Shown here in pieces: positions 21,055 to 56,435 of a stretch of DNA of 64,000 nucleotides. Every line of letters starts with the position of its first letter. Within the stretch, counting starts at the first letter, position 1. Source of the stretch: Ophelia neglecta (lineage: Eukaryota). The notes under the pieces are model-generated. The model was not told the origin of the DNA. It saw only the letters and a program-made list of their open reading frames with translations, and searched no databases. Where the stretch lies: contig OZ260665.1 in assembly GCA_965285935.1 (NCBI GenBank), forward strand, positions 49,786,001-49,850,000, read 5' to 3'. A program made the translations under genes and the position numbers.

Positions 21055-21203
21055 GTAACGCCCGGAAGTGTAGCAGCCACAGGATTAACACAGGATGACG
21101 TCATACTGCGGATCGGAGACTCGGACACTAACGCGCTTACGTATGCACAAGCTATGGAAGTCATCAAAGAATACGGCAACACGCTACAGCTTTGCATATA
21201 CAA
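21055..21203 (+). CDS. Gene B exon 2: PDZ C-half (missed by the ORF track)
   Basis: tttacag|GTAACG ... AA|gtaagt; 149 nt, the same length and phase as gene A exon 2. VTPGSVAATGLTQDDVILRIGDSDTNALTYAQAMEVIKEYGNTLQLCIYK. Confidence 0.93.
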
Positions 21204-31275: not shown

Positions 31276-31787
31276 CATCAGCCCTACCAGCAGGTCCAAC
31301 AGCCAACCAGCCCAGGAGGAACAAGGCTGCAACAACAGCTCTCTAACATGGAGATAAACGGACCCCCGAGCTACAACAAAGCTTCCTCTAGTCCCCAACC
31401 TTATGGGGGCGGGGCACCGAGCTACCCTGGCCCCGGGCAGACCCAATACGGAGGGGGAGCCCCAAGCTACCCAAGCCCGGTGCAGGCCCATTACGGTGGA
31501 GGCCAACAGAGCCCTCACAGCCCCTATGGTGGGCCCCAGACCCCGGAGGCTCCAAGTTATGTGGGTAGCCAAGGCCCACAGTATGGGTCTCCTCAGTCAC
31601 CGCAGAGACAGGGTCCACCTTCTCCTAAGAGACTTGGCCCTCAGAGGCATGGACCTCCTGAGCCGACAGAACATCAGGTACCGGACGCCGTCGTGAACGC
31701 ATTTGCAAAGAACCCCGAAAAGAAGCCATTTGCTTACGCTCCCGATATGAGTAGTATTCAAGCACAGAGGGAAAAGGTCAGACGGAG
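31276..31787 (+). CDS. Gene B exon 4: G/P/Y-rich repeats and a KKPFAYAP motif
   Basis: ttgatag|CAT (phase 0), in frame with the 147-aa ORF; ends AG|gtaagc (phase 2). Confidence 0.9.
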
Positions 31788-31898: not shown

Positions 31899-32126
31899 AC
31901 CGCCCAATGCGCATATGCCTCGGTACCAGGAAGCTTTGAACCTTCCTTCTTTTGATGACCGCCCAGTCCACAAACCAAAGGGTGCTACTCAGACGCCGGA
32001 GCAACCCCAAGATAATGCCTCGATGGTGTCCAATATGCAGTACAATACCCCCTTGAATATGTACTCAGAAGACGCTGTTGTTGAAGCATTTGAAGGACAG
32101 ACTGGGGCAAATGTCACTGGTGTCGG
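31899..32126 (+). CDS. Gene B exon 5: ZM (Zasp-like) motif
   Basis: ccttacag|A ... GG|gtaggt; contains VSNMQYNTPLNMYSEDAV, matching the QYNxPxxxYS ZM pattern. Confidence 0.92.
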
Positions 32127-32382: not shown

Positions 32383-32486
32383 ACAGAAGAAAGGAGAGCC
32401 AGATGTGACACAATCGGCGACTTATAGAATGATTCACGGCCTCGACAAGCACAAACCACGCCCTAAAATTGGCCTGCCTGACGAAT
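32383..32486 (+). CDS. Gene B exon 6
   Basis: cattgcag|A ... T|gtaagt (phase 2 to 1). QKKGEPDVTQSATYRMIHGLDKHKPRPKIGLPDE; SATYRMI resembles the ALP-family SxVYxML linker motif. Confidence 0.9.
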
Positions 32487-33283: not shown

Positions 33284-33445
33284 CCTATGAACGGGCGCCA
33301 AGAGGACCAACGTCAGACGACGAGCTCAAATTTACTGGTGTCAACCGACAAAGCACCATACCATCTAGGTCCTTCCAGATGGTACAGCAAATGACGAAAA
33401 ACACGCCAGAAGATTCTGGCGTGGACACGACCTCCCTATATCCAG
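33284..33445 (+). CDS. Gene B exon 7: type-A repeat 1
   Basis: 162 nt, phase 1-1; LKFTGVNRQSTIPSRSFQMVQQMT; G|gtgaga donor. Confidence 0.9.
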
Positions 33446-33632
33446 GTGAGATGGTGGCCATTGCAGACAGGTCAACCTTGCAGAGTCCGAAGTTCAACCG
33501 TACCCACGTCGCATGAAACCAATCGTTTTTATAAGCTAAAAACATCAGGCATAATTATAACAAAGAAGTTGAAGGGTCTCTAAAAATGTCTCTAGCAGGC
33601 TCTTGGGATCATAAGAGATGATTACTTTGCAG

Positions 33633-33776
33633 GTGGTCATGCAGAAAGTGGGGTAGACACGCAACCCATTGGCGACTATGACCAGAAGTCTATCAGATAC
33701 GTAGGGAAGAACATCCCCTCAAAGTCGTTTAGAATGCTCCAGAACCTCACAGGTGGAGAGCCGGAGCCTCTTAATG
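33633..33776 (+). CDS. Gene B exon 8: type-A repeat 2 (missed by the ORF track)
   Basis: 144 nt, phase 1-1; IRYVGKNIPSKSFRMLQNLT; tttgcag| acceptor and |gtagga donor. Confidence 0.92.
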
Positions 33777-33900
33777 GTAGGACCTCCTCTAGTTTGAATG
33801 ATAAAAGGTTCACACGGATTAATCATGTTTTCTTATCATGAAGCATTATATAATCTGGTTCTTTGATGTCAGTATAACGGTATGTTTATGAAATTTGCAG

Positions 33901-34095
33901 AAAGTGCACCTAATCAACAACAACAGAAGTCCAGAAGAAGAAGACCACCGAACCAACCCCAGAACCCTAACTATTATTCAGATGATGCACAAGATTCAGA
34001 CGGTGGCATAGACAAACTTAGTTATGTTGGTGGCAACATCCCGTCCCGATCTTTCAAGTTACTGCAACACGGTCTGGGAGATGATCAACATAATG
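33901..34095 (+). CDS. Gene B exon 9: type-A repeat 3
   Basis: 195 nt, phase 1-1; LSYVGGNIPSRSFKLLQHGL. Confidence 0.92.
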
Positions 34096-34810
34096 GTTGG
34101 TATCCATAAAATTATAGTCATTTTACAGGTTGATTACTTTTGAAATAGAAGGTTAAGCTTGTTCTTTTAAAAATTAAGTAGTGGTATGCATTAATTTTGA
34201 GTGTCTTAACCCTATTAAATCATGTTATAAGTTTTGATATTTTGGAATTTTTGAAATAAACTTTATTGCTGCTAACATAGTAGATGAATGTCACCAAATT
34301 CCAATGTGATTAAGCGCACATTTAAATTTTACTAGTTACGCTCAGTTTATTTTCGTTGCCCTAACAGTTTCCCCAATATGTGTCTTGTATTTTTGCAATC
34401 CTCATTGTAACACAACAAAAGCAATGTTATCTCCGCACACTTCTGAACAACCTAACTTCAAAATCTGAAGCAACTTATGCATTTAAGTCACGATTTGTCA
34501 CAATATATGTTTTGTTCTGCATTGCTTTTGTTATGTTCTCATTGGCAAGTCATCTATCTTTTTTGTCAACCCTTGCTTTCATATCATGTCCAGTTCAAGG
34601 TTTTATGCTTTCAAAATTTGGTATATTACAAACAAGGCATGCATGTTGAAACATTTGCCTTTAAATATTGGGCAACGCGATATTTCATCTAAATAAATGT
34701 CCAAATTATTTCGAAATGAATTCTGCTGTAAAACCATAAAGCCTGTTGTTCGATAAGTCCCGATTGGCTGATTCCCCGATCTGAGTACGCCTATTCTTTT
34801 TCTCACACAG

Positions 34811-34929
34811 CACCCTCTCCTCCACCTAATGGGAACGCCCCCGGCCAAGGACGCACTGTAAAGGTCGTTCGTTTACGTGCCCAAAATCAACCGCAAGCGC
34901 CGGATGACGATGGCTGCACAGACTTCTAG
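34811..34929 (+). CDS. Gene B alternative last exon 10a (short isoform; missed by the ORF track)
   Basis: Strong acceptor ttctttttctcacacag|; APSPPPNGNAPGQGRTVKVVRLRAQNQPQAPDDDGCTDF*. AATAAA at 35521, 35802 and 35933. Confidence 0.88.
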
Positions 34930-35520
34930 TTTGCGCATTTCACGTGTTACGTCAGCCACCACGTGATCAGCGTTGAACCAATGAATAGTCCATTGTGTTT
35001 TCAGAAGCTCAGAAGCTTTTGTATACCTTTCTTTTGACGGAATAGCTTACTGGTTTCATGGTGCAAATTACAACATGATATGTGCAAAAGTCATGTCACA
35101 TATTCAATTTAAACAAGGATACATCCATAGTTTCTGTGCATGGCCCATATGGAGAATAGGATTATGTTTATAAATTGTGCCAAGCCATACGAAATGGACT
35201 AAAGAAAATGGATACCATCAAAGGGATTCTTTTCCTGCAGTATTCTTTGTAAAAATGATATAGCGTATGGATTGCCACATAACTGCATGACTATCTGTGA
35301 ATGATGTGCATTGTATGTGCTTGAGTGCTGTGAATTCTTATATGAGTCACCCTTGATGTCACTTCTCACTTGATGACGTTACTTTGGTATTTGACCTACT
35401 GAAATAGTTTATTCAATTTGATTGAGACAAGTTTCAATCACTTTGAATGAATGCCAATTTACCATAATTTATTGTACTGTTAAATATGCACCACTCTTTC
35501 TTCGAGTGGTTTTTTATCAA

Positions 35521-35938
35521 AATAAAACAAGAAACTTCCCATGAATTTAGGTGCGAAACTGCGTGGTCAATAGTTAATGACACAAATTATTTATTTGTTT
35601 TTTTTTCATATGAAAAAAAGTAGGCAAATTTTATAACCATATGAGTAACTTGTTAGATGTAGGATTGTTTGCTTGCCGACATCATTTGATGTCGTTTTAA
35701 CATTGTTGATGTATTATGGACAACTTTTACAATTTGAAATTTTCACTCCACTCTCTTCAATTGTACCTTCATAATCTGCTGTAAAATTGCCTTTATGCAA
35801 AAATAAACTTCAGTTTTGTTTTCAAGAAATCTGGTTTTTCGCATATTACCCAAATAGGCATCTGGTGGCTTTGAAGCAATTTATGTTATAGATTGTGTTT
35901 TACTTAAGTAATTTATGTTAACTTGAAATTACAATAAA
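35521..35938 (+). terminator. Candidate polyadenylation signals of the short isoform
   Basis: AATAAA at 35521-35526, 35802-35807 and 35933-35938, downstream of the 34929 stop; which one is used is unknown. Confidence 0.45.
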
Positions 35939-36696
35939 GAAAATACATTGGGTAGATTTAAGTTAGAATGTTTAGATTTGTGAAATAGACTTAAACATAA
36001 CGAAACGTACATTGACTGTACAAGTCACGACTTAACATGACATTATATGTAATATTATTTTAGGGGTAGGAAAATTGAATTATGAAAAGTATTTTAGGGG
36101 TAGGCAAATTGAAATATTAGAATTAGTTTTAATACCAAAGTAAAATGGCGGCTTAACGCTACGGACAAAGGACGACGCCCTTCCACCCCGCCAGATCACA
36201 TCTCCCTATGAACCTTTAAAATATATACAAGTTTTAACTGCATTCACAGTAAAGTCTTTGCAAAAAATAAATAAAAATTGTCACATTAGAGTAATTTTGT
36301 TTTGAATAAATGCTTTCTGAGTGTGAACACATAAAACCTCATAAAACAATAAGGACAATTTCGTGTAAGTTATATGGCTAGCATCAAATTACATGTCCCA
36401 AATCCATAACTATGCTCTCTTTGGACTGATATCACTGAGGAAACATCAATAGTTTTTCATTGTTCCCTAAAACAAATGACACTGTCCTTGTGCTACAAAA
36501 TAGGTCCCTCCCTTTAGAGAATGCATCACTGAAATGACCTGTTTCAAACAACGCGGCCAGCGTCACCATCTGAAAGGGTATTCGCATTGCAAAGTTAAAT
36601 AAGTGATACTATTTGAAGAGAACATAAAAACAACCAATCATTGCAGTAAAGTGAGAAGAACAGTATAGGTAAATATTTAGTCATTTTCTTATCCAG

Positions 36697-36843
36697 AAGC
36701 AAAGTTGGGTACTGGCGAGTACAGCGATGACGAAGACACTGGTTATCCCATGGACAAGATGTGCTATTTGGGTAAAGACGTTCCTTCTAAGGCCTTTCAA
36801 TTAATACAAGGGGTATATGCTCCAGACTCCTCGGATGCTAAAG
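36697..36843 (+). CDS. Gene B exon 10b: type-A repeat 4 (long isoform)
   Basis: 147 nt, phase 1-1; DKMCYLGKDVPSKAFQLIQGV. Confidence 0.88.
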
Positions 36844-36961
36844 GTAATTGTTCATACATCCTTCCACTTTTTAATAAAGTAATAATTCATAGCGCGTTAA
36901 TATCCATGTAGTATGCAAATATACAAACTGGTTGCCACTACATCCGCTGGGTTGTTTCTAG

Positions 36962-37117
36962 TTGTGGCCAGCGAGAGAAGACTTCGTCGTCGACGTCAGA
37001 AGTCACATGATGCCGAAAAAGATGAGGATGATGAGACTAGCGCCTTCGACGAGCAGGCATATCTGTCTGGCCAAGTGCCTATTGTCAGTGGGGAGGCCAA
37101 ACCAAGACCTCTAAGAG
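36962..37117 (+). CDS. Gene B exon 11: type-B repeat
   Basis: 156 nt, phase 1-1; FDEQAYLSGQVPIVSG; G|gtaaga donor. Confidence 0.87.
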
Positions 37118-38503
37118 GTAAGAGAGCATGCCTCCTGTTGTAAATAGCATCTTCAGAATGGATACGTTAATTAAATACAACTCTACACATCTGCCTACGA
37201 AAAAGTGGCAGCGGATTCGCATAAGACAAAGAGAAATCACCAATCAAGTAAAAACCGTTGAATAGGCAGATGCAGGAGGCGTCAGACGCGAGGTACCAAT
37301 TCCTTATTTCAAAATTGTAAATATGTATGTTAAGAAACATTTGGAGGAACTTGCATATTTTGCATCGTATTATTGTCCATCCCTATATACGGCTCGCATG
37401 ACACCTAAAAGACATTTTGCATACGGGCTGTGTGAAAACAACGGGAATTGGTACCCGCGAGACAAAACAAAAAGATTAACCATGAAACGTCCATTAAATT
37501 GGTCGAAATTCACTAGGAACAACCGGCCACAGCCACAGAAAACTTGACCCCACTTTCTGGAGAGCACATAATACAATGAAACACTCGGGTTTTTTTAAAG
37601 TCATATACAAACAACCAATTGCTATCATAATTATAAGCGGTGTTTTAATTTATGCATTCTGTCGATAAAAAAAGGTCCTTACATTATATGTTTTGTATTC
37701 AAACATTATTTATTTTTTCTTTGATGATCACATAGTGTCATTATACATTGCCGCAATGTGCAACAGTTTTTCATGCGGTGATCACATAAAAACGGGTCAG
37801 TGGCTAAGGCAGAACAATTATGAAATATTCCATAAGAGGGAGTATATTACGGATTTAGCTCATTCACAAATTTGAGACTTAGGATGGATGAGTCTAAGAA
37901 ACACAACACAACAGATTGATGTATATAGACATCGCATCCTCAAGAGAATATACAAATCCTCAATTATGTAAAAAAAAAAGTGATGTAATAACTGATAAAT
38001 CAACAAAGTCAACCTATCACAACTGCATCTGAAACATATGATGCTGCTTCAGTATGAATGCATATTGGCTTTAGCCCTAGGACGAGCGGAATATATTTTA
38101 CTTAAAGGCATTGCAGTCTTTTACTGCGAATGTTTTAAAACAAGGGCAACTAGAAACCATACAAGTGCAACCTATAACAGTGACCTTGAATATTTACTGA
38201 CTCTCTTACGTCTGATAAAATCATTTATAGTATAACATATGCATGGATATAGTACTATATGCATCGTGAGGATGGATTTAAGACTAGCATAAAAACAGCA
38301 CCCCACCAGCCACATCCTTTAAAAAGATTAATTTTTAACACAAATCTGCGCAAGTTCTCATGTAACATATAATTAGCTTTAAGTGGAACATGTTCAAGAC
38401 TGCAGTGAGTGCCTTGTAGTAGATAACAAGCTTCATTAGTTATTATTGCGTCTTTGTTTTACAGCAGGCTAATAAGACATAATTAGTTGTTATCTTTTGA
38501 CAG

Positions 38504-38650
38504 AGGCGCTTATCGATGAACAAGAACACCAGGATGAGGAGGAGGGGGAGGCGGACAAATACAAACAACCTTTCGACGAAAACGAGTATTTGTCTGGGAA
38601 GGTCAGTTTCCTAGGTAATGAACCAAAAGGATTTGACAGAGCAAAAAGTG
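38504..38650 (+). CDS. Gene B exon 12: type-B repeat
   Basis: 147 nt, phase 1-1; KQPFDENEYLSGKVSFLG. Confidence 0.87.
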
Positions 38651-38754
38651 GTACGTTTAGTTTACTCCTCGCAATTTGAACTATCCTAAATCGTTTAATT
38701 GATTTATTAAACTCGTAATCTGACACTAGCTTATCATTCACTGATACTTCACAG

Positions 38755-38841
38755 AACCAGATGAAAAGCCCGAGTGGGTAAACAAATCTTCCAAGATGAA
38801 GAACATCGATGAAAACACTTTTCCCAGAAGCAATAGGGAAG
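38755..38841 (+). CDS. Gene B exon 13: short type-B variant (missed by the ORF track)
   Basis: 87 nt, phase 1-1; EPDEKPEWVNKSSKMKNIDENTFPRSNRE. Confidence 0.82.
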
Positions 38842-39017
38842 GTATAGACTCACTTGTTTCACAGGAAATGTTGACTAGTTAAATGCCCCATTTGAGTTTT
38901 GTGTCGGTACATGATCACTTAGTAGAAACTTAGTTTTCCTCGTTAATAGCCTAAGCATCAAACAAAACCTGCACATAAATATGTCTGCATCAAGCTGTCT
39001 TTGACAATTTATAACAG

Positions 39018-39110
39018 AGCACGATGAGCAACCCGATTGGGTCAAGAAAACAACGCAAATGAAATCACAACAATTTGATGAAAGCACATTTGTGAAAACG
39101 GCCCATGAAA
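39018..39110 (+). CDS. Gene B exon 14: short type-B variant (missed by the ORF track)
   Basis: 93 nt, phase 1-1; EHDEQPDWVKKTTQMKSQQFDESTFVKTAHE. Confidence 0.85.
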
Positions 39111-39295
39111 GTATGTTAAAATTAAAAAGGTGTGATTAGATTAGCTGCACTGTTTTAATTCATTCGAGCTGTTTGGAGTGTGAGTATACGTACTGTGTGT
39201 GGATAGCTTGTTTGTCGGACACGTTTGTTTTGTTTTCTACCTTCTTAAAGATATAATACGAATTTCACAAGGGTTCTTATTGAAATCCATAACAG

Positions 39296-39388
39296 AAGCA
39301 GGGGACCAGCCGGACTGGATTAAGAAAACGGAGCTAATAAAGTCTAAACCCTTTGACGAAAGTGCCTTTGTTAGAAGTGACACTGAAC
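39296..39388 (+). CDS. Gene B exon 15: short type-B variant
   Basis: 93 nt, phase 1-1; AGDQPDWIKKTELIKSKPFDESAFVRSDTE. Confidence 0.85.
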
Positions 39389-39724
39389 GTATGTACATTT
39401 ATTATTACTTAGAATTTATCAAGAAAGATAATTATGCAAAGTACTTTTATAAGTGCAAGAGGAAAGGTCCAGAAGGCATTATAGTGGTGAAGTGGATAAG
39501 ACTGAAGACAACTGGTGAAGAACAAACAAGTTTGCAAGCATGATGACGACTTTATTGAAATTAAACTCAAGAATGAAAACGTGCATAGCACACGCTCTCG
39601 GAGCCGCGCAAAATTAGTGAAACAGGAACATAATGAAAATAGATGGTTTATTTTAAACCATCTATTTTCAACAGTGTTGACCAATTAGTATAACAAACTT
39701 TATTTTGCTGTTTTCCACATTTAG

Positions 39725-39844
39725 CGGAGAGGGAGGAAAGTCCTGGTCCTCGCATGAAGGAGGAGGAATACGACGAGAACGCCTACCTGTCAGGACAGAT
39801 AGGGGTTGTCAGCGGAGTACCTCCTAAACCAATGCCAGTTCATA
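39725..39844 (+). CDS. Gene B exon 16: type-B repeat (missed by the ORF track)
   Basis: 120 nt, phase 1-1; EEEYDENAYLSGQIGVVSGVPPKP. Confidence 0.86.
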
Positions 39845-40198
39845 GTAGGTTCCGTTTAGAAGAGCAAATACGTTAATATTGTATTCATTTGAACGCCATA
39901 CCAATTGTCACAGTATAAGAGAGTATATTGTGTGCGGGCAATAACGAAAATAACTGGTTACCACTTGAAACAATTACCCGTACTGGTAATCTTCAGTCAT
40001 TTGACTGGGTTATTATCGTGTGATTGCTCAACATGTATTTTGACTTTCGTAATTGGTTCGTAATTGCACTGTACGCCACTGAACACCCGCTTCCATATTG
40101 TGATCGTTTCACAGATAAAGGAGCAGACTCTATGATATAAGGCAAAAGTGCGATAAAGCTGCTTTAAAAATTATTTCAGTTCGTTAATATTATTTCAG

Positions 40199-40498
40199 TA
40201 CGGTCGACTGTTAAACCCCCCGGTAAAAACTTAGAGACTGAACTGCCAGACTGGGCCAAAAAAAGGCGCCAACAAAAGAGACGCCGGCGCGAGCAGCAAC
40301 CGGAAGCTATCGTGCAGAACGGGACTGCAGGACCCGAACAAAAAGCAGAGGATGATGCTAGCTTGAAACTTCGCCAGCAACAGGAACAAGAGGAGGAGGA
40401 ACGACATAAACAGCCATTCAACGAGGACGCTTTTCTGGCCGGGAAAATCAATATTCTCCGAGGATCTGTTGATAGGGAACAAGTTCCCAGAGCAGTTG
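40199..40498 (+). CDS. Gene B exon 17: type-B repeat with basic and acidic insert
   Basis: 300 nt, phase 1-1; LPDWAKKRRQQKRRR...KQPFNEDAFLAGKINILRGSVDRE. Confidence 0.87.
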
Positions 40499-43400
40499 GT
40501 AAGACTTTATACTTGCATTGCCCTACTGAAGCGACAAAAAGTATCTTTGTTGCCCTCAAGGATATATGTATATGTTTATATGTGTATAATTATAGTATAC
40601 ATATACATAAAATTATTTGCATGTTACAAGGTGATTTAATATCTAGATGACATTTGAAGTACTTTAATAAGTTGCCTTATTCATAATTAATTCATACTCT
40701 TAATTAATTCCTAGCTCTGGCCACACATTCGATATTTTAGGAGTTACTAGAGCCTTCGTTATGAAAAACAAAATTTCCTTTACTAAGTTTATTTAGATTC
40801 AACTTCTACCCAAACGTCGAAATATTTGTCTTTTTCGGAACAGATCATATGCCATTCTTTTGGTTCAAACGGAAGATGTTTGACCATTTTATTGGCTATC
40901 CGTGTTAGGTAAACATTTCGTTTAGAATGTGCCTTCATGGCAATCCGTATTTGCCACTATCTTTTCAGCTCAGCTATTAATTTATATGTGTTCCGTAGGA
41001 AACCCGTCCGTTTGAATAAGAAAAACAGAGACTTTCAGTTTTAGAAGTGGGAAAAATACAAAATAGCATAATTCATTTAAGTAGTACGCCTATCTGGCAC
41101 ATTGGCATGCAAGTCCTAACACAGTTAAGCGTGTAGTGCAGAGCTACAATTGCCTGTTCTATTCACTCGGTTAACCAATTGAGTGTTTTCAAAAAGTGGT
41201 TAGCTGAATGTTATATTGTGACAAAACGATCGCTTTAGCCCTTCTTTATAATTATTAAAGATAACACCTCAATCTGATGAAATGTTTGATTTTCGTATTA
41301 TTATTCCAACAGTGTGTAAATGCTTATGCGAAATGACAGTGGCAGAGACTTGGAACATAGATGTATTGCGGTTCCACGAATTAAAATTAAAACCTCCCAT
41401 ATAAAATACGCCTATAATTGATGTCCTGTATCAAATACATGTACATGTATAGCAGATAAATACTTTATAAATACATAGCCTGTGGAATAAATTATTAATG
41501 TAACTCGCTGAAAACAATGCTCGTCACCCTCGCCTCTCCTGTCCCCCTCGTCATGCCCATGGCCACCCTCTTCAGGCCGTTCATGAGAATCTTTGATGTG
41601 AGCACCATAACACTTTTGTTGTCAAAAGCGACCAATTTGGTGATGCATCACCATTGAAATAATAGTTATTTGTAATAGCCCTTAGACGCAAAACTACTAC
41701 TTTTTCCTCTACAAGCCCACACGAATACTAGTAATAAACGTCACATATTCCCTTTGGCAAAGGCCCCGCAGCCACTAATGAAAATAAAAACATCATTGGT
41801 AAGACTAACAAAATATCAATAGAATATACAATATGTATATAGCTAACCCATATTATCATGTCTTCCTGTCTACCGAGATTATTCGAGATATGAGTAATCT
41901 TTGCCAGTTTTATATTTGGTTCTTACGTTTCAAAGTCTCGGAACTTTTATTTCGCTCGGAGTCGTTTTCCAAAGACAATTAACCGCGGTGCAAGAAATTA
42001 GACCTTAAAGAGCCATGTAGAATATATTACCGAACATAACAAATAATTAAATCGCTGCATCCACGCACAATTCAGTGGCTTGGAATCTTTGGTTCAATGG
42101 CATTGTGTTTGACTGCCCTCGCGTTCTTGTGTAGTCGGCCGAATGACATGTCACGTCAACATTATTCATTAAATGACGATAACCTGGAGATGCGATTTCA
42201 CAGTCCATGTAAGCGAGGCTCGCACGAGATAGTAACTGTTGTGAGAATCAGATTGTCGTCTGTTGTATGTACACCTGTTTAGGCAATTGGCTGGCAGCCA
42301 TCCTCCACCCCGAGGCACCTTCGGCCTCATTCTACATGCATGAGGCGAACTAAACCACCTCCGAGGCACAGATATTTCAGTTTCACATCGTCAAGTCAAA
42401 GGACATCATCGACTGTGTTTGGTGAAGAGCACCATGTAAATTTTCTATAAAAAAAACTCATGTGAGAAAGTGCGGATATTAATCGTTGCATTAGAAGGGG
42501 TTTAAGGATTACATATTACTCCAAAGTATAGGTTTGCTTTAAAATAAGGACAAACCTTCTAGCAGAGGGCATGGCACTAGTAAGGGACCTTAATCACAAT
42601 ACTATGAAGATACAGACAGCCATTGGACTGAGGAAATACCGCAACACTAGATCACTGAGTGCCGAGTTTGCCGACTTTTATAAACAGTGTACGGCCAGAC
42701 ATGCGCGCACCTCCCTGGCCGACTTGATTATCTCCAACTCAGGTATGGACCTCCCAGTGACGTAGTCAGTCTCCCTAAAACACCTTGTGTGGGATCGTCG
42801 GGAGGTTTTTTTTAAATTGAAACTGGTACATATTCAATTCCCTCATATCATTGGAGTTATAAATACACAATTTGTTCATAGCAGAAATGTGGTATAAAAA
42901 GTGTTTTCAGTCTAAATTGCTAGGGGCATTGGACAGCTTTCGCCGAAAGCGACCACTAATACAGGATGTCCTAATATATTTTTGACTGAAATTACCTCAA
43001 CAGCAATCGGTAGTCCTTTTAATTAATACATCGTAAAGGCAGACTAATGATGACATAACGATTAAGGGCATTATAAGTTAATAGATGTTTTATTAGTCAA
43101 TCGGTGAATTTGCACTATGGTTCACTTATGAGGATCCTTGACTTTTTTCGTTTGTTCTCAACCTTTTTGTAAATAGAAATAGCAATAACTAGAAATGGAG
43201 ATACATTTAGCCCAACTTGGAGGAATGTATCGAACACACAATTATATTGAACAGATCGTTCTCCTTGGCCTAAGACCAACAATAAGAAAAAGTCACTGCC
43301 TGTAGACAAAAGAGTTAACTGTGCAAATAATAAATCATTATTATAAAAGTTTCGGTATCGCACGGTATATATTAGGAATGGCTCCCATGACCAAGGTTTG

Positions 43401-43954
43401 TTGTCAAGGTTTGTGAACATTCTCATACTTAAAAATATTCCATTTAATTGTAATTCAAAGTTCTTGCAGTGTTATAGGAAGTTGTCAGTATTCATTCTTT
43501 CAAATGTATGTTAAAACTCTTGCGTGGAAAGTCAATAACATATTCCAATTCACTAAGAAGAATATATTAAATTTAGGCTACGTTTTACTTCAATTAATAT
43601 CTCAAATTCGCCATTTGAGACTAAAACAAATTGATTTGTCAATAGGAAGTCGCTGATCAATTACAGGTGATATTTGATGTTCATTCAATGTGCCTGGGTT
43701 ATTTTTTTCCATGGTTTGACACTTTTTAATGACTATGTAACTATAAGACGATACTTTGTAACACTCAACGCCATACTGTTAGTATAATTGACCAGATACG
43801 GCCATTAGGGTAGGAGAAGGACAAGTCCATTGGGACATCAGGAGGAATCTCGGTATGTTGAAACTCTCACCTCGACCTAACTCAGACGTGATGGGTCAGC
43901 TACTGTAATCATACTCTAGCACCTCTTTTTAAAAAAAGCTCATTAATAACTTTA

Positions 43955-44156
43955 ATGGCGGATGTAGGGTATTTCAAAGAGGTTGCGCTATCAGTGTCTA
44001 TGATTGCCTCCGTCCTGAGGGGTAGTTGACTTCAGCCCCCCACCCCCCTCCCCGCCCACTTCCATCCCCACCCCAAACCCCTCTAGAGGCTTCCTAGAAT
44101 AACTTGTGCAGGGGAGGGGTCCTAATATTCCCGTGCTGCCCCTCTAGAACAGCCAT
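43955..44156. mobile_element. Degenerate GC-rich MITE-like relic
   Basis: Imperfect terminal inverted repeats ATGGCGGATGTAG / CTAGAACAGCCAT around C-rich and G-rich internal tracts. Confidence 0.35.
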
Positions 44157-45673
44157 GGCTAATTACCTTTGTAGGTACATGTAACGAAGTCACTGGAAAT
44201 GTGCCAAACACACCCTAATGCCAGTATAATATATCCTTTGATCTACGAAACTAGAACGAAAACTGCCAATTATTTCTCAATATATACAAACCAAACCAGA
44301 TGGTGATCGACAAGGTCCGTCACCATACTAGTCAGCCTACTTGTGCATAACATAGGGGCCTGTATATACCGGCTTATTGGGCCCGCATTAAAGATAATTT
44401 AATTAAATACTTTTCAATGAAACCATAAATGCTAATACGTTATAGAAATTATGATATTTGCAATTAAAACAAATTCGAGATACATTAACTTCTATGTGGA
44501 ATTCAAACGCAATCCATTGTGTTTTGTCTTTTGGTCAAATAAATGTGGTGAATGAGATGGAATTGTCCCAACAACTGTAAATCGACATTATTTCTCATGC
44601 ATTGATACAAAATGCATGTATAAGGTCTATATATATACCAATGTGACAGTAATAAATGTCGACGCTAGTGAAATAAGTTCCCACGCTTCATCAAACAAAA
44701 TTTCAAAGCAATAAAATATCCACAACTAGATTTCATGACATTTCAGCTGCGATCCTTATAGGTGTAATCTGCCATCGAAGTAATAACAACTTCTGCAATA
44801 ACAGGCTTCGTGTATAACAAAATTATGCCTAAATAACAAAGCATTATAATCAGGCCCGGGGGCAAATAACATTCGCGGAAGGGACTGTAAAACAACCGAC
44901 TCGGTGTAATACTAACTTTGTCAGCTAAATAATTGTTGTTTTATTGCACTATAATTGAGGCGTTTTGTTTTGTGTGCTAGTGACAATTGAATAACAGACC
45001 ATGATACACATGTACATGTCATGTTCTGTCAGTAGCGATGTGCATACTAATTATTCAATCAAGAAGAATTTATGCAGGAATAAGCCGTTATGCTGTTGTG
45101 GTATGTTAACATCATGTTTTCCTACCAAAGCGCACTTTTCTAGCCTGACTATGCATAGACATGCACGATATTTTATTTCCACATGCACAGCAAATTGAGA
45201 TGAAGCATTATAACTTCAAATCAACCATCATTGGCTACCGGTAGGCTACCGGACAAATGTCCAGAACGAAAGAATCAAATGAATTTTCACTCCCCGGGGA
45301 TGATCTAGAACCGACCTGGGCCATGACGTTCACAAAATATCCTTCCTGCATTGTCTTCTTCGCACAAGTATTCAATTAAAAGTGGGTCGAAATCGGTACA
45401 AAACAATGAATTGCATCATATTTTATAGAGTGTTGGGTATTTCTGCCGTTTAATGTGTCGTGGTTTTTATTAAATTAATATAAACATGTAAGGCATATTT
45501 TACATTCATAATGTTACAGATTAAAGGCAAATTGTCAAAGCCAAACTTGTAAAATCAATCATGTGAAGATGGCAATGCACAAGTTGGAGGTTGAAACCAG
45601 CATGTTTCAGTGACACGGATGTCATCCTAGAGAGACCAGTTAGCTATCACTCAGTTTAATGTCATGTTTTCAG

Positions 45674-45823
45674 AAACCACCACTGACGACAACCTTGCCC
45701 CATGGCAGAAAGAAGAACCAGAAGAGAAAAAGGAAGAGGTTTTTGATGAGGACGCCTATCTCAGGGGCAACATACCCCTTTTGCGCCAATCTGTGGAACG
45801 AGACAGTAGCCTTCCACCAAGAG
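45674..45823 (+). CDS. Gene B exon 18: type-B repeat
   Basis: 150 nt, phase 1-1; APWQKEE...FDEDAYLRGNIPLLRQSVERD. Confidence 0.88.
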
Positions 45824-45947
45824 GTACTTTGAATAGGCTCTGTTATTGGCAGACAAGGGCGTAAATAGAAAAATAGTAACAGATTAAAGCTAAAAGCAAC
45901 TGAGCAAGATGTTTTGATAACATTTCCCTTTGCTATCTATCTGTCAG

Positions 45948-46115
45948 AGCCTCGACGACAGCAAAAGCGCCAGCGGGCGCCTTGGGAACGTGATGACCCG
46001 GATAGGGAGGAAGGCGCATGCTCAGACGCCGAATTTGATGAGAATGCCTTTCTTGCCGGGAGGATTCCTGTTGTCAGAAATAGTGTAGAAAGAGAGACCC
46101 CTCCTGCAACAAACG
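45948..46115 (+). CDS. Gene B exon 19: type-B repeat
   Basis: 168 nt, phase 1-1; APWERDD...FDENAFLAGRIPVVRNSVERE. Confidence 0.88.
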
Positions 46116-46373
46116 GTTAGCAATAACTTTAAAGGTTTCCAATTACACGACTTGCCTGGTTTTAAATTATTAAAAGACCGTTTACTGTGAGCTGTATGAA
46201 CACATGCTTATGTAAATAATGCAACGAAGCTGTTAAATAATCTTTATCAGTCCTATAAATTAATTAGTTAAAAGTTGGGTTATAATACAATGTTCCATTT
46301 CTCTATCCAAACTCAATGAGACTAGCCGTTCTCGATAACGATCTGATAAGTATATGCTACAACATTTTTGCAG

Positions 46374-46451
46374 GTGCAACCCAATTTGCTGTTATACCAT
46401 CGAGGAAGTTCAACATTTTGCGCCGTTCAGTGAGCCGCGATAGATCAATGG
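46374..46451 (+). CDS. Gene B exon 20: A/B hybrid repeat
   Basis: 78 nt, phase 1-1; ATQFAVIPSRKFNILRRSVSRDRSM; tttttgcag| acceptor and |gtaaga donor. Confidence 0.84.
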
Positions 46452-47986
46452 GTAAGAAATTCAATGGCATGCTTTTTGCCATGGTGGTTTTGGTCACGAA
46501 ACACGTGTTTCGAAAATCCCCTTCGTAATCTTGTTAATATGGTGGTTGCCTAGAAAAGGTACTTACTTTTTCTGTTATTAGCCCACGAGATTCCCATGCA
46601 CTATCAGTTATGAAGATACAATTATAATTTTGCTTCGTAACGGTACCCAAACTGTTGAATTTTATAACTAGACATTTTAACATGTCTCGTTTTGGGCCGT
46701 GTTAAACATGTTTTTAATTCAAGTGGATCGGGCATATTTAGTACACGTTCAGTGTGGCCTTCAGAAAATGGCTACGAAAAACTTCAAATTGAAAATATCA
46801 ATATATTTAAAATATTTTATTTCAGAATTATTATAATGTAAATGAAAAAAAGGGCAAATCTGATTGTTTGCACACATCTCCTTTACCAGATTAAAAGCAT
46901 GTGAATACCACCCAATTTTAACATTTGAAGCATACAAATATAACGTAAAATAAAACATATCTCCTTGGTATGTGAAATACGCCCACTCTATGCGTTGACG
47001 ATATTTCCATATTATGTATGTTTAAGTTTATGCCATGTTTGGTGAAAGCCCAACGTGATCTAGGGTTATATAAGAAATGTAGTACGATACGAAGATCATT
47101 TGGAATGAAAACTTCGTTTAAAACTCGCCATAAAAACATGGCCCAAGCACGAATTAAGCAGCATACATGAATGCTGCTTAATTTGTGGCAAGTTCACCCT
47201 TGACCTGGAGGTCCTTTGCCCGAAACCTCGACCTTTGGTTTCATTGAAATTCAGGATATGCCACTCTTGAGGAGCCACTCTTGAGGAGGAACCACTCGTA
47301 AGGCGCGACGGTAAACAATGCGGATTAACCAACTTGGTTTATTTGCGGAACCATTATATGGGCAGGCCTACAGCCATGATTCTGTAACTAGCCGTCATAA
47401 GAATCAGTAACACTTACGGCTAGTACTGCTCCCAATAAACCAAAAAAAAGCCCATTGGAGTAAGACAAAGGCTGGTGGGAAAGTAACTACGTGTATTGCA
47501 TATAACATACCATTCACAATGGTTGGAATCAATAACGCTCTAACTCACGTTCAGCCATTTTGCAGGAGGAGGAAAGCAAACTAAAAGATAAAGTTCTAAC
47601 TCAATCCCAATGACATATTTTTACGTGCAACAAAGGTCTTAATAAAGCCATTTAACTGATAAATGAAATGAATAAAATTTAGTCAGTTGGCTTCAGTCAA
47701 ATAAGTATTCAGTGTGTTACAATAATAGAATATTGCATTAGTACCAACCTAAGCGATAAAGAATATTTGGATAATGAAAGTTTCAACTTCAATTAAATTG
47801 GCAGCATTAGGAACGGGCCATTTGTGTAATTTCTTGATCGGTGTTTTGGCTGTGATTGGTACCATTTGGCGAAATCTGAGCATTGGACAACAATAACCAC
47901 GTCATAGAAAAGCAGAGAAAAGAAAGTTATATACCGGAAGCTATGGTCGTTAAAAGTCCATGGTGGAACCACTAGCCTAGTATATA

Positions 47987-48148
47987 CAGTGAAACCTGTC
48001 TAATCAGGTCAGTCAAAGGACTGGAAAAACCTAACCACATCATGTAGGTGACCTTAACACAGGCATTATAGAGATTGGGCTGTTTTTAAGTGAACATAGT
48101 GGGCAGGTGACCTTATTACAAAGGTGACCACAAACACATGTTTCACTG
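47987..48148. mobile_element. Tc1/mariner-pogo-type MITE, copy 1 (162 bp)
   Basis: TA|CAGTGAAAC ... GTTTCACTG terminal inverted repeats, internal AGGTGACC repeats, and homology to the copy at 50785. Confidence 0.8.
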
Positions 48149-48209
48149 TGGTGTATCCGCCGTACTATATCGCCTTGTACAGTGTTCTACGAATAGCATG
48201 TAAAGAAAG

Positions 48210-48233
48210 ATATATATATATATATATATATAT
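48210..48233. repeat. (AT)n microsatellite
   Basis: About 12 AT units. Confidence 0.9.
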
Positions 48234-48608
48234 GAACAATTTACAAATTCCGACTAATCAGCAAACATATTATTCAGACCACATAAAATAAGAGTATTGC
48301 CCAGTAGTCTACGACAAAATCACATATCTTTAATCTGGTATAGCCTGCTTTCGTGTGGAAGGATGTTATGATATCAGAAATCGTTCGTAGTTACAGATTG
48401 CCAGATGCAATTGATAAACCTTTGTAAATTCCTTGGTTTTGACCCGTATCTTACATGTCATTGTTGATTGTGTTTGGTTTAATTAATGCCCTGTTGACTT
48501 TCAATACATTTAAACACTTGCGTTTATTGCACATCGTCCCAATCTGCATGCCATTTCCCACCTTTTTGCATGGCATATTGGTCTATATATTCAACCCTTG
48601 GCATGCAG

Positions 48609-48767
48609 ACTCAGACGCTTGTGAGGAGGAGAAGAAAGAAAACGAATCTGACAAAGTCATCGATCACATGGCTTATTCTGGATCGAAAATACCATCAAAG
48701 ACGTTCCTCAAACTAAAGAAAAATGTTACCAGACAAACTAGTCTAGAACGGAGTCAGGTTCCTCAAG
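48609..48767 (+). CDS. Gene B exon 21: type-A repeat
   Basis: 159 nt, phase 1-1; IDHMAYSGSKIPSKTFLKLKKNV. Confidence 0.86.
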
Positions 48768-49464
48768 GTATCCATACGGAGCTATATAGACGTGGTGTGC
48801 AAATATATATAACGCGTATTGACCACTGTCCAGTCTAGAGTATAACATGTATTTTCATGCTCTACATTTTCAAAACAAACCATTTGTTTAAACCAATTGA
48901 AAAATATATTCTAAATATATTTTTTGCGAAGATAATCTCAAGAAAGTTGGTCTGTTTGGATTTTATTATCCTCTATGATGAAGCCCAAAACGAACATCTT
49001 CAGCCAATATACAGTGTCAGGGTCACGACACAAACAACACTTGATAACTCAGACATGAAAAATTCGGTTTCCAACTCCCCTAACAACTCTGAACTCAAAT
49101 ATTAATTGGAAAAATGATGTTTAAAACTTAGGCTATTTGCATCCGGTCAATTTGTATAGAACAAGATACATACGGTTAAAACAATGGTTTGCTATGAAAA
49201 AAGGGTAAAGTTGAAAAACAAAACAATAAGACAGGACTTCGTTTGCTGTTTTATGTTACTGACACGCATAAGACAAACAGCTGGGTCGGATTAGAATACA
49301 ATGAGGTAAATATTCGGGTTTGGCAGTGTACGTGGTGTAAGTCTAATTATATTACTGATAACGGTAGCAAGACAAAAAATAAAATGTTAGTTCACACTAT
49401 TTGAAAAATGTTTGCAGAAGCTTTAGCACCATTATAATATTAACGATAATTAATTTAAACACAG

Positions 49465-49622
49465 ATCCTATGGCGCGCATACGTCAAAAGGCTGTGCCGG
49501 AAGCTGGAAACATACCCCCCGTGGATAGCGCCATTGACAAGATGACCATTGACAAGCATGACCCGGAAAAATACATGGAATTTCTCAAACAAACTGTTGG
49601 GGAATCGAATGGACCAGTCAAA
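49465..49622 (+). CDS. Gene B exon 22 (penultimate exon, long isoform)
   Basis: acacag|AT ... GTC AAA|gtaatg (phase 1 to 0); DPMARIRQKAVPEAGNIPPVDSAIDKMTIDKHDPEKYMEFLKQTVGESNGPVK. Confidence 0.8.
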
Positions 49623-49744: not shown

Positions 49745-49777
49745 GTGGAAGCAGAAGAAGAAGTGACAGATTTTTAG
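49745..49777 (+). CDS. Gene B last exon 23 (long isoform): VEAEEEVTDF* (missed by the ORF track)
   Basis: tgacatttttatag|GTG in phase 0; ends with the same TDF* as exon 10a. AATAAA candidates at 51582 and 52398. Confidence 0.83.
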   Translation: MEAEEEVTDF

Positions 49778-55871: not shown

Positions 55872-56435
55872 TTATGAGGAAGGCAAAGACAAGCCCAGAC
55901 GATTAGTGTCCTTGGCATACAGTATGAGTTGCCGTATGAATCCCTCGTTGGTCAATATGCGACCACGAGTATTAGCTGTCAACAGCACAGCTGTTAAAAT
56001 GTCCATATTTTGGCTCTCCATCAGATACGCAACACACAAGGTGGCGCTGCGATTGACTCCCTTGGCACAGTAGACAAGAACCCGACCATTCTGGGCTTTG
56101 GCGTGGTCAATAAATTCCATTGCACGAGGAAAATGTTTCAGGATACGGTAATTAGAGTTATCGTCTGCTTCCAACTGCAAATAAAACTTTACACCAGTGT
56201 TGTGGTCATAGGGACACGCGTTTGTTTGGAGATTTCCGCCTGCACAATTCAGCACATGCGTAATGCCTATTTCCTTCAACATGCCGTGACTATCTGCATC
56301 TGAGTAATCACCTAGATAGAGATGATTCAATAACCGTGCCGGCCCGCTGGTGAAATAATAATCCTCAGTTGGGCGATTCGTTCTCTGGAGAATATCTCTT
56401 ACTTTCCTATAACATTCCTCTTCGTTGTCTTCCAT
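55872..56435 (-). CDS. Atypical dual-specificity protein phosphatase (DUSP3/13/26-like, catalytic domain only); 187 aa from ATG 56435
   Basis: LYLGD, GITHVLNCA, general-acid loop EADD, P-loop VLVYCAKGVNRSAT, AYLM and R..I..NEGF..QL. ACCATGG Kozak; acceptor ctattttcag| opens the exon at 56448. Confidence 0.95.
   Translation of the reverse strand: MEDNEEECYRKVRDILQRTNRPTEDYYFTSGPARLLNHLYLGDYSDADSHGMLKEIGITHVLNCAGGNLQTNACPYDHNTGVKFYLQLEADDNSNYRILKHFPRAMEFIDHAKAQNGRVLVYCAKGVNRSATLCVAYLMESQNMDILTAVLLTANTRGRILTNEGFIRQLILYAKDTNRLGLSLPSS

Follow-up and report, generated by a model that had tools for sequence, protein, structure and literature searches.

Gene identity and upstream exons

The window, the whole 64-kb stretch of DNA analyzed, contains an annelid gene that, from its domain content, is a paralog within the ALP/Enigma (Zasp/PDLIM) family, of PDZ-ZM (DUF4749) type and lacking LIM domains. 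Upstream of an array of short motif-bearing exons, tblastn, Pfam, and a PF15936 genome search identified exons encoding a PDZ domain and the N-terminal part of DUF4749.

14366–14473, + strand: exon for the first half of the PDZ domain (…WLQRPSGDVPWGFRLTGGRDYQQPLTVQR), borders approximate; tblastn of annelid transcript protein P0016, 75% identity
21052–21204, + strand: exon for the second half of the PDZ domain, donor leaves phase 2; Pfam PDZ 30.9 bits (above the cut-off), tblastn, phase from sequence
27738–30099, + strand: large Pro/Gln-rich exon, phase 2 to 0; 829-codon open frame, borders
31276–31787, + strand: exon with the KKPFAYAPD…REKVRR box, phase 0 to 2; tblastn of P0016 and P0128, borders
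31899–32126, + strand: ZM exon (QYNTPLNMYSEDAVVEAFEGQ), N-terminal part of DUF4749, phase 2 to 2; Pfam DUF4749 28.2 bits at profile positions 2–29, PF15936 genome search
32383–32486, + strand: exon with SATYRMIHGL (middle of DUF4749), ends in phase 1; tblastn, borders

The last of these exons ends in phase 1 and, therefore, feeds the phase-1 array. The Pro/Gln-rich exon is probably optional; a counterpart was sought in transcript P0016 and none was found. A search for LIM domains in the 64-kb window returned zero matches, which agrees with the original remark that the array occupies the usual place of the LIM domains in Zasp/PDLIM proteins. The canonical ZM and four-LIM gene of this genome lies 7.8 Mb away on the same chromosome.

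The array exons

The array was predicted to consist of 15 exons with lengths that are multiples of 3 and with phase 1-1. When the sequence was scanned for AG|exon|GT intervals with these lengths and an open phase 1-1 frame, all 15 were recovered on the + strand at exactly the implied coordinates. Exon borders were inferred from the sequence together with cross-species transcripts. Each exon below was recovered by the scan and, unless noted, by both motif profiles described in the next section.

33284–33445, + strand: exon 1, 162 nt, type A (IPSRSFQMVQQMT)
33633–33776, + strand: exon 2, 144 nt, type A (YVGKNIPSKSFRMLQNLTGGE); near-identical unit in transcript L001
33901–34095, + strand: exon 3, 195 nt, type A (YVGGNIPSRSFKLLQ); junction with the terminal exon mirrored in transcript L003/P0003
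36697–36843, + strand: exon 4, 147 nt, type A (YLGKDVPSKAFQLIQ); ortholog L014:1276-1377
36962–37117, + strand: exon 5, 156 nt, type B (FDEQAYLSGQVPIVSG); ortholog L014:1488-1646, phase 1-1, 66% identity
38504–38650, + strand: exon 6, 147 nt, type B (FDENEYLSGKVSFLG); L014 ortholog
38755–38841, + strand: exon 7, 87 nt, type C (PEWVNKSSKMKNIDENTF); array-derived profile, missed by the independent profile
39018–39110, + strand: exon 8, 93 nt, type C (PDWVKKTTQMKSQQFDESTF); array-derived profile, marginal with the independent profile; similar P.W.QKK units in L014 and Capitella P0127
39296–39388, + strand: exon 9, 93 nt, type C (PDWIKKTELIKSKPFDESAF); array-derived profile
39725–39844, + strand: exon 10, 120 nt, type B (YDENAYLSGQIGVVSG); L014 ortholog
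40199–40498, + strand: exon 11, 300 nt, PDW box, degenerate unit, and intact type B (FNEDAFLAGKINILRGSVDRE); L014:3595-3930
45674–45823, + strand: exon 12, 150 nt, PW box and type B (FDEDAYLRGNIPLLRQSVERD); L014:9767-9913, 72% identity; aligned across five annelid sequences
45948–46115, + strand: exon 13, 168 nt, PW box and type B (FDENAFLAGRIPVVRNSVERE); L014 ortholog, annelid alignment
46374–46451, + strand: exon 14, 78 nt, short type A, A/B intermediate (IPSRKFNILRRSVSRD); 92% identity to L014
48609–48767, + strand: exon 15, 159 nt, type A (AYSGSKIPSKTFLKLKKNV); L014 ortholog, annelid alignment

All 15 exons have a pyrimidine-rich acceptor ending in AG, a GT donor, an open frame, and a length divisible by 3, and as far as their sequence tells they are genuine coding exons. 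The donors of exons 3 (GTTGGT), 12 (GTACTT), 13 (GTTAGC), and 15 (GTATCC) are off consensus. Chance can be ruled out for the phase pattern because the non-array exons of the gene are mixed in phase (2, 0, 2, 2, and 1) and the orthologous exons of a related species keep 1-1. Since all junctions are in phase 1, any exon can be omitted in frame, and since none of the 15 exons ends in T, joining any two of them cannot produce a stop codon. The claim that any subset of exons is skippable in frame was therefore upheld.

Motif units and classes

A profile built from the array exons placed a single unit in every one of the 15 and had no further hit (E < 8, six frames, 64-kb window). An independent profile, built from 305 units of other species only, found 12 of the 15 exons and had no other match in the window; it missed exon 7, and exons 8 and 9 were marginal. 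Units outside the array were found neither elsewhere in the window nor in the 762-Mb genome.

The motif comprises three related classes: A (exons 1–4, 14, and 15), B (exons 5, 6, and 10–13), and C (exons 7–9). Type A follows the pattern Y.G..IPS[KR]SF..LQ..T and, by alignment, is the C-terminal box of DUF4749, i.e. the ‘QSRSFRILAQMTGTE’ box; type-A units of homologs align to about positions 50–90 of the DUF4749 profile. The ZM motif proper was rejected as the identity of the units since they map to this C-terminal box, apart from ZM. Type B (FDE.AYL.G.IP…) has lost five residues (S-K/R-x-F-x) relative to type A, and type C, PDW…FDE..F, is truncated. Exon 14 links type A with type B (IP-----LLRQSVERD) in the alignment. 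The prediction of one motif copy per exon thus held as one profile unit in 15 of 15 exons, but it did not anticipate the three classes or the second, degenerate unit in exon 11, which is intact in the L014 ortholog.

The array residues are 35% charged and 72% disorder-promoting. An AF2 model of the orthologous tail had a mean pLDDT of 51, with a helix of 5–7 residues on each FDExAYL. These values match the charged, probably disordered context that had been proposed, and the model supports the units as short helical motifs within a disordered charged tail.

Two modules and their 3' ends

Three further coding exons close the gene, one of them within the array.

34811–34929, + strand: alternative terminal exon between exons 3 and 4, phase-1 acceptor, ends …DDDGCTDF* and closes the short isoform; L003 tail
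49465–49622, + strand: penultimate exon, phase 1 to 0, DPMARIRQK…DKHDPEKYMEFLKQ, conserved helical tail; tblastn, L014, annelid alignment, helices in the AF2 model of the ortholog
49745–49777, + strand: last coding exon, VEAEEEVTDF*; L014, like ends in annelid sequences

The tail of L003 orthologous to the 34811–34929 exon reads …RRVKVTRLRSQ…GATEF*. An …EVTDF* end is common to L001, L002, P0128, and P0043, and P0127 ends in …ITDF*. The exon at 34811–34929 appears to divide the array into a short-isoform module (exons 1–3) and a long-isoform module (exons 4–15). Use of this exon after exons 1–3 would give a short isoform, PDZ-ZM-A×3-TDF*, and skipping it would add exons 4–15 with a second …VTDF* end. 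With two modules split by a terminal exon and three motif classes, the array is not the uniform series that was originally described.

Conservation

The profile was matched by 109 proteins. The arrangement of two to four type-A units and an [ST][DE]F tail is widespread among protostomes, occurring in annelids, molluscs, arthropods (chelicerates, myriapods, crustaceans, and insects), rotifers, and a tardigrade. The motif is old. The short-isoform architecture is common across protostomes; the long tail was found in annelids only, as was type B (Capitella, Paralvinella, Ridgeia, and further annelid transcripts).

In L014, the syntenic locus of a related species, exons 4, 5, 6, and 10–15 are retained one-to-one in phase 1-1. 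Its counterpart of exon 11 (L014:3595-3930) is a single exon with two intact B units. Conservation with L014 at the DNA level is confined to exons, and the flanking introns are unconserved except for ~30 nt adjoining exon 15 and the penultimate exon. No clear L014 orthologs of exons 7–9 were found by tblastn; their loose counterparts are two P.W.QKK units in the same interval. The proposed origin by exon duplication was supported, as the units align from A to B to C and the positional orthologs in L014 are closer than the paralogs.

Interpretation of the array

We consider it likely that these are real exons of a LIM-less Zasp-family paralog, arranged in two modules, with skippable motif exons that serve as a docking array. 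Behind the PDZ domain, ZM, and the mid-DUF4749 segment, the protein would run on as a charged disordered tail of duplicated phase 1-1 exons, each array exon contributing one short helix-forming unit. Each unit would be a putative site at which a protein of the Z-disc or dense body docks. We infer the partners by analogy from ZM-LIM binding in Drosophila and from ALP-actinin binding, which makes the LIM domains of canonical Zasp or the rod of alpha-actinin the candidates. In the published work on LIM and actinin binding, it is the ZM region that was studied, not the type-A box (PMC6910826, PMC2670261). How many exons are included could set the valency of a scaffold that otherwise acts as a LIM-less ‘blocking’ isoform.

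Uniform phase 1-1 is not evidence of regulated skipping since tandem duplication of one symmetric exon yields the same pattern. A constitutive array, in which phase is a by-product of duplication and the sole regulated choice lies between the 34811 terminal exon and read-on with all of exons 4–15, is the strongest competitor, and we judge it somewhat less probable than not. Annelid transcripts confirm the exon 3-terminal exon, type A-type B, exon 15-penultimate, and PDZ-B array junctions. B units are included back to back in transcripts of four other annelids and in one Capitella gene model, which points to inclusion as the default, and annelid B and C exons appear to be included by default. 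The same unit set in two related species (L002 and P0128) also favors a constitutive array, and the exon-by-exon L014 orthology shows that selection keeps every exon. However, assembled contigs reveal the dominant isoform only, and entry into the array varies: L001 runs straight from a unit like exon 2 into one like exon 5, whereas the entry point in L002 and P0128 is a unit like exon 4, with ZM and A1-3 left out of P0128. Homologous type-A exons are, moreover, cassettes in four RefSeq gene models. In these computational models, from three insects and one snail, isoforms skip type-A units one at a time: Bemisia X1-X6 show all four combinations of two type-A cassettes, Onthophagus X3-X5 show three of four, and single-unit skips occur in Agrilus X4 and Physella X5. 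By analogy, combinatorial splicing in this gene is plausible, and we infer alternative splicing in this animal.

Whether such splicing goes so far as to use many or all of the possible subsets of the 15 exons, and so yields a large set of motif valencies tuned by tissue, is doubtful. The frame and junction properties, the Bemisia and Onthophagus combinations, and the off-consensus donors are in keeping with it, but isoform variation of the B and C exons was not found in any annelid, the flanking introns are largely unconserved with L014, and the terminal exon parts exons 1–3 from exons 4–15. It is improbable that part of the array, chiefly the type C exons, is chance-open or recently dead and lies outside the mature protein. 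The poor detection of exons 7–9 by the independent profile and in L014 would fit decay, but PW…FDE..F units occur in the Capitella gene model and the L001 transcript, and the corresponding L014 interval has two P.W.QKK units. Moreover, all three exons retain open frames, AG/GT borders, and phase 1-1 despite divergence too great for alignment beyond the exon, which marks them as old. Least probable is that exons 4–15 are a transcription unit apart from the PDZ gene, driven by a promoter of their own downstream of the 34811 exon: Capitella model P0127 does begin at an exon-4-like unit and a polyadenylated short isoform probably ends at ~34930, but P0128, a single 2.4-kb transcript contig, connects the PDZ half with the B array and the …EVTDF end, the B array is also joined to upstream exons or to type-A units in P0129 and L001, and exon 4 begins in phase 1 without an ATG context.

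Comparison with known systems

Close parallels to this gene are Drosophila Zasp66 and Zasp67, the LIM-less ‘blocking isoforms’ of the ALP/Enigma family, which likewise have an N-terminal Zasp-type PDZ domain and ZM/DUF4749 and no LIM domain. Alternative splicing of Zasp66 is extensive and yields at least 13 transcripts (PMC3591300), and the Zasp family has been proposed to work by ZM-LIM binding at the Z-disc (PMC6910826). Published descriptions of Zasp66 and Zasp67 mention none of the repeated DUF4749-tail boxes, the type B and C units, and the [ST][DE]F tail, all of which are present here. They are also reported to be insect-specific, whereas the architecture here spans annelids to a tardigrade.

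The ‘QSRSFRILAQMTGTE’ stretch was noted in vertebrate ZASP in 1999, where it was described as occurring once, in an exon that the ZASP isoforms shown have in common (PMC3206570). This box, present in vertebrate ZASP, ENH, and Enigma, is the C-terminal end of Pfam DUF4749 (PF15936), and type A, e.g. PSKSFRMLQNLTGGE in exon 2, shares S-x-S-F-R-x-L-x-x-x-T-G-x-E with it. The single box described for those ZASP isoforms contrasts with the six copies in their own symmetric exons and nine derived units found here. The 26-residue ZM motif of ALP corresponds to residues 184–209 (PMC2670261); ZM here is QYNTPLNMYS (32026–32112), distinct from the type-A box.

The PEVK region of titin is a disordered, alternatively spliced repeat region of a sarcomere protein. 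The Zasp52 IDR is a long disordered segment of a sarcomere scaffold with many small exons, and their inclusion can vary between muscles (PMC13521563, PMC9751615). The array resembles both as a long disordered sarcomere-scaffold segment assembled from many small exons. Unlike their low-complexity spring sequence, each exon here bears a conserved linear motif derived from a family-specific box, and the disordered region replaces the LIM domains instead of sitting between them.

Array exons and gene layout

The + strand was scanned for AG/exon/GT intervals of the predicted lengths that were open in phase 1-1. All 15 array exons were recovered at the implied coordinates (33284-48767), with lengths of 162, 144, 195, 147, 156, 147, 87, 93, 93, 120, 300, 150, 168, 78 and 159 nt. 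Every acceptor is pyrimidine-rich with a terminal AG, and every donor is GT. Phase 1-1 was found in 15 of the 15 exons, and phase 1 is also offered by the flanking exons. The array exons end in G, A or C only and, thus, no stop codon is possible at any exon-exon pairing. The original prediction that these are symmetric exons, any subset of which can be skipped in frame, was therefore borne out. The same scan returned many spurious open AG/GT intervals in the introns, so borders and an open frame carry little weight by themselves. The 15 exons are set apart by their motif content.

Features of the array gene and its neighbors
9328-9420, and positions 49773166-49773261 of the same chromosome (G000:C8), minus strand: sites of a head-to-head paralog
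14366-14473, + strand: first half of a Zasp-type PDZ (75% identity to the PDZ of P0016, an annelid transcript protein)
21052-21204, + strand: second half of the PDZ (Pfam PDZ, 30.9 bits; cut-off 23.2)
27738-30099, + strand: Pro/Gln/Ser-rich single exon of 2.36 kb with a run of 13 prolines (phase 2 in, 0 out)
Upstream of the ZM exon, + strand: KKPFAY…REKVRR exon
32026-32109, + strand: match of the ZM exon, QYNTPLNMYSEDAVVEAFEGQ, to DUF4749 profile positions 2-29
32383-32486, + strand: SATYRMIHGL exon, directly after the ZM exon; ends in phase 1 and feeds the array
34811-34929, + strand: second terminal exon, between array exons 3 and 4; phase-1 acceptor, ends …DDDGCTDF*
49465-49622, + strand: penultimate exon, after exon 15 (phase 1 to 0)
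49745-49777, + strand: last exon, ends VEAEEEVTDF*
55875-56495, minus strand: intronless dual-specificity phosphatase gene (Pfam DSPc, 112.7 bits), syntenic in the related locus L014

Simple motif patterns were confined to the 15 array exons and the + strand. Run over the whole window in six frames, a profile built from the array exons gave exactly one unit in each exon and no other match under an E of 8. This agrees with the claim of one motif per exon; exon 11 also holds a degenerate unit. A second, non-circular profile, built from 305 units from proteins of other species, matched only exons 1-6 and exons 10-15 (E 4e-12 to 5e-3), with exons 8 and 9 marginal and exon 7 missed. In the whole 762-Mb assembly, the repeat profile matched the array locus only. 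Searches used single exons or natural transcripts of other species as queries. The non-array upstream exons have phases 2, 0, 2, 2 and 1. The sequence of the 27738-30099 exon finds no match in the orthologous short transcript P0016 and, thus, this exon is probably optional; its simple skipping is disallowed because the next exon starts in phase 0.

Motif classes

The exon-peptide alignment revealed three related classes of unit. Type A (Y.G..IPS[KR].F..LQ..T) is found in exons 1-4 and 15, with a short form in exon 14. Type B (FDE.AYL.G.IP, with the tail directly after) is found in exons 5, 6, 10, 11, 12 and 13, and is type A minus five residues (S-K/R-x-F-x). This relation is plainest when exon 14 (IPSRKFNILRRSVSRD) is set against exon 12 (IP-----LLRQSVERD). 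Type C, in exons 7-9, consists of a PDW.KK box and FDE..F without the tail. A PW box also occurs in exons 12 and 13, and exon 11 contains a PW box, one degenerate unit and one intact B unit. In a related species, the single exon orthologous to exon 11 holds two B units, both intact. The alignment shows the units to be related, but in three classes and not as a single motif. Origin by exon duplication is supported. A DNA-level repeat search over exons 7-9 found nothing, and the lack of alignment between the introns dates the duplications as old.

No Pfam family was obtained from any array exon searched alone. In homologs, type A aligns with the C-terminal third of DUF4749 (PF15936): residues 334-365 of P0004 fall on profile positions 62-86 and residues 727-766 of P0014 on positions 50-90. 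The ZM motif proper is a 26-residue stretch in the QFNTPMQLYS region of ALP (PMC2670261). Its equivalent in the window is the QYNTP…YS stretch at 32026-32112 and, therefore, type A is not the ZM; the idea that the repeated motif is the ZM motif was rejected. Faulkner et al. (1999) noted a 'QSRSFRILAQMTGTE' stretch in ZASP, hLIM and Enigma (PMC3206570). Type A corresponds to this stretch, the C-terminal box of DUF4749, and matches its pattern; exon 2, for comparison, reads PSKSFRMLQNLTGGE. The 'QSRSFRILAQ' box, present in ZASP and its relatives, has been on record since 1999 and is not known to have been assigned a function.

Family identity

The hallmarks of the ALP/Enigma family are an N-terminal Zasp-type PDZ, a ZM/DUF4749 region after it and 1-4 C-terminal LIM domains. 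The window gene has the first two. DUF4749 on the ZM exon scored 28.2 bits against a whole-domain cut-off of 28.7, just below it because one exon alone was scored, and the feature was counted as present; for P0003, P0009 and P0018, which are full-length homologs, the score is 53-66 bits. Of the 60 PF00412 (LIM) matches of the genome, none falls in or near the window, and the orthologous transcripts end at …TDF* without LIM. The array thus occupies the place after PDZ-ZM where LIM domains would be, as was predicted. On this feature, the window gene is a LIM-less relative and not a PDZ-LIM protein.

A canonical ALP/Enigma gene is found at a separate locus of the same chromosome (41.989-41.997 Mb; L016, G000:C8:41989000-41997200, minus strand). 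Two ZM-type exons, NKQYNTPINMYS… and NNQYNSPLGLYA…, are present in it as separate exons, a parallel to the alternative ZM exons in vertebrate ZASP; the four LIM matches that follow are all interrupted by introns. With no LIM in or near the window and this canonical gene elsewhere, the window gene is therefore a LIM-less ALP/Enigma paralog. In domain architecture it resembles the Zasp66/Zasp67 class of LIM-less Zasp paralogs, which also have PDZ and ZM without LIM. No Drosophila sequence was among the matches listed in the repeat-profile protein searches.

Relatives in other animals

The repeat profile gave 109 matches in 1.84 billion proteins. Two to four type-A units with a C-terminal [ST][DE][FYLM] were found in molluscs (Octopus, Pinctada, Candidula, Physella and Elysia), arthropods (chelicerates, a millipede, a centipede, a barnacle and many insects), rotifers, a tardigrade and annelids. 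The ends of these homologs include GTDF, STDF, VSDF, ISEF, GESEY and KSDL. Where the N-terminus is present, PDZ and DUF4749 are found and no LIM. Type B units occurred in annelid sequences only, namely Capitella teleta CAPTEDRAFT_224947, Paralvinella palmiformis, Ridgeia piscesae and unnamed transcript contigs. Within the known ALP/Enigma family, the group is an unrecognized pan-protostome LIM-less Zasp-like architecture, in which an annelid expansion created a derived motif class. A word search with the open frame of the annelid transcript L001 returned only four proteins because low-complexity words filled the candidate list, and no usable match came from the ESM Atlas when its features were searched with the P0001 B array (P0001 is the orthologous tail protein).

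Nearly all homologs are named 'uncharacterized' or carry misleading automatic names. Misleading RefSeq names of family members (P0011/P0123-P0126, P0037, P0007 and P0026) include 'nucleolar and coiled-body phosphoprotein 1-like', 'YLP motif-containing protein 1-like', 'trichohyalin-like', 'translation initiation factor IF-2-like' and 'WAS/WASL-interacting protein family member'.

Conservation in annelids

The related-species locus, L014, covers 20 kb of a 44.5-kb contig. It is syntenic with the window: in both, a dual-specificity phosphatase gene follows downstream, on the other strand. Exons 4, 5, 6 and 10-15, the penultimate exon and the last exon each have their best L014 match at the corresponding position. 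Identity between positional counterparts is 45-92%, which is above the identity to most paralogous units, and the phase-1 acceptors and donors of L014 are at the expected places or within a few codons. L014 carries an additional B exon and, in the interval of exons 7-9, two looser P.W.QKK units. The comparison of exon counts proposed in the original prediction shows positions kept for most exons, with the extra B exon in L014 and loose counterparts of exons 7-9. The number of units thus drifts from lineage to lineage, with the frame rule preserved.

Exons 12, 13, 14 and 15 and the penultimate exon could be aligned one-to-one, fragment-wise, over five annelid sequences, with conservation concentrated on the motif cores. 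Two consecutive near-identical B units (DENKKPFDERAYLAGRIPLV…) are found in L002 and P0128, from two related annelids, and one is found in P0129. This pair points to a recent duplication in that lineage, and the number of units is labile in evolution.

DNA-level conservation between the window and L014 is restricted to exons, apart from two short stretches at the ends of the intron between exon 15 and the penultimate exon. These are 48768-48799, a run of about 30 nt that follows the exon 15 donor, and 49441-49464, a run of about 24 nt that precedes the acceptor of the penultimate exon. An alternative donor or an element of splicing control could lie here.

Splicing

A search of sequencing runs found the locus in three runs, all from one study, and in no RNA run. 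The three hold 93-98% of a mostly intronic query and, therefore, are DNA. Indirect evidence from annotated homologs and annelid transcripts points in both directions. Between RefSeq isoforms of the homologs in Bemisia, Onthophagus, Agrilus and Physella, the difference is exactly one type-A unit (29-44 residues) at a time. Bemisia tabaci X1-X6 retain both units (of 41-43 and 44 residues), lose either one or lose both. In Onthophagus taurus, units of 29 and 38 residues are missing singly or together from X3, X4 and X5. Agrilus planipennis X4 is without a 44-residue unit, and Physella acuta X5 is without a 42-residue unit. This comparison supports combinatorial splicing for homologous type-A exons in other phyla. 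Alternative inclusion of type B or C exons was not seen. The annelid transcripts compared all carry these exons consecutively, which speaks against extending cassette behavior to them. Uniform phase 1-1 is also the expected product of tandem duplication of one symmetric exon.

The two terminal exons at the locus imply a choice between a short tail (exons 1-3 and the 34811-34929 exon) and a long one (exons 4-15 and the second TDF end). Several junctions are confirmed by transcript contigs from other annelids. L003 (protein P0003) reads ZM, four type-A units and …RRVKVTRLRSQ…GATEF*, the counterpart of a junction from exon 3 to the terminal exon at 34811. L001 proceeds from an exon-2-like type-A unit to the B array and …EVTDF*. 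P0128 has the PDZ, a KKPWAY exon, an exon-4-like unit, the B array and …EVTDF*, with the ZM and the first three A units skipped. Entry into the long tail, thus, varies, from the exon-2-like unit in L001 to a junction of the upstream linker with an exon-4-like unit in L002 and P0128. These differences across species suggest module-level alternative splicing.

Disorder and proposed function

Counted in whole codons, the 15 exons give 718 residues, of which 35% are charged, 21% hydrophobic and 72% disorder-promoting. The tail of P0001 was modeled with AlphaFold2 from a 7-sequence alignment. Mean pLDDT was 51, and 303 of 501 residues were below 50. In the array part, the only structure is a 5-7-residue helix on each FDExAYL (pLDDT 70-79), and a helical C-terminal piece comprises the last type-A unit and the penultimate exon. 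Composition and the low pLDDT of this model support the predicted setting of the motifs in charged, probably disordered sequence.

The best-supported reading is that the array forms a disordered tail of short helices that would act as docking sites. Helix number would be set first by the choice of terminal exon and possibly also by skipping of single exons. In Drosophila, the ZM region of LIM-less Zasp isoforms binds Zasp52 LIM domains and caps Z-disc growth (PMC6910826), and the rod of alpha-actinin is bound by the region around the ZM of ALP (PMC2670261). The type-A box may share a LIM or alpha-actinin partner, and any partner of type B would likewise be conjectural.

Both alternative last exons (34811-34929 and 49745-49777) end in an acidic …TDF*. 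The conserved [ST][DE]F end resembles a class I PDZ ligand, and the …TDF* ends recall the C-terminus of alpha-actinin, which is bound by Zasp PDZ domains. Such an end could close a head-to-tail link with a Zasp-type PDZ.

A bolder proposal, which we regard as unlikely, is that annelid type B (FDExAYLxGxIP) is a new linear motif with a different partner, derived from the ancient DUF4749 tail box by loss of the SRSF core. The long isoform would then be a splice-tunable cross-linker of mixed valency, through which a LIM-less 'blocking' Zasp acts as a 'growing' scaffold. If so, its sites would be the A sites, the B sites, the PDZ and the PDZ-ligand-like TDF end, and the array would offer a lineage-specific way to set the size of Z-bodies or dense bodies in obliquely striated muscle.

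A LIM-less Zasp-like gene with a multiplied box, one copy per symmetric exon, is maintained in protostomes. The annotated insect and snail isoforms include or omit single copies and, thus, form a natural dose series in which box binding, and copy number against scaffold valency, can be asked. Box copy number bears on the ZM-LIM oligomerization model of Z-disc size control. The annelid 15-exon array, with its derived motif class, is the longest copy series among the sequences compared and a clean case of linear-motif evolution through exon duplication and core deletion. Recognition of the LIM-less Zasp-like family would improve the annotation of many invertebrate genomes.

Neighboring features

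The head-to-head paralog lies upstream on the opposite strand and has its own Zasp-type PDZ (PWGFRLTGGKDFKLPLTVQR) and ZM exon. The repeat profile found no type A, B or C unit in it. Occurrence of the motif elsewhere in the genome, this PDZ paralog included, was rejected since the profile search of the assembly gave no match. Two tandem-repeat tracts have long open frames on both strands: 2732-3139, with a unit of about 24 nt (…PTNNTNQR…), and 24100-25100, with repeats of about 70-120 nt (…FTLTHVIYS…). Both are probably minisatellites and not genes.
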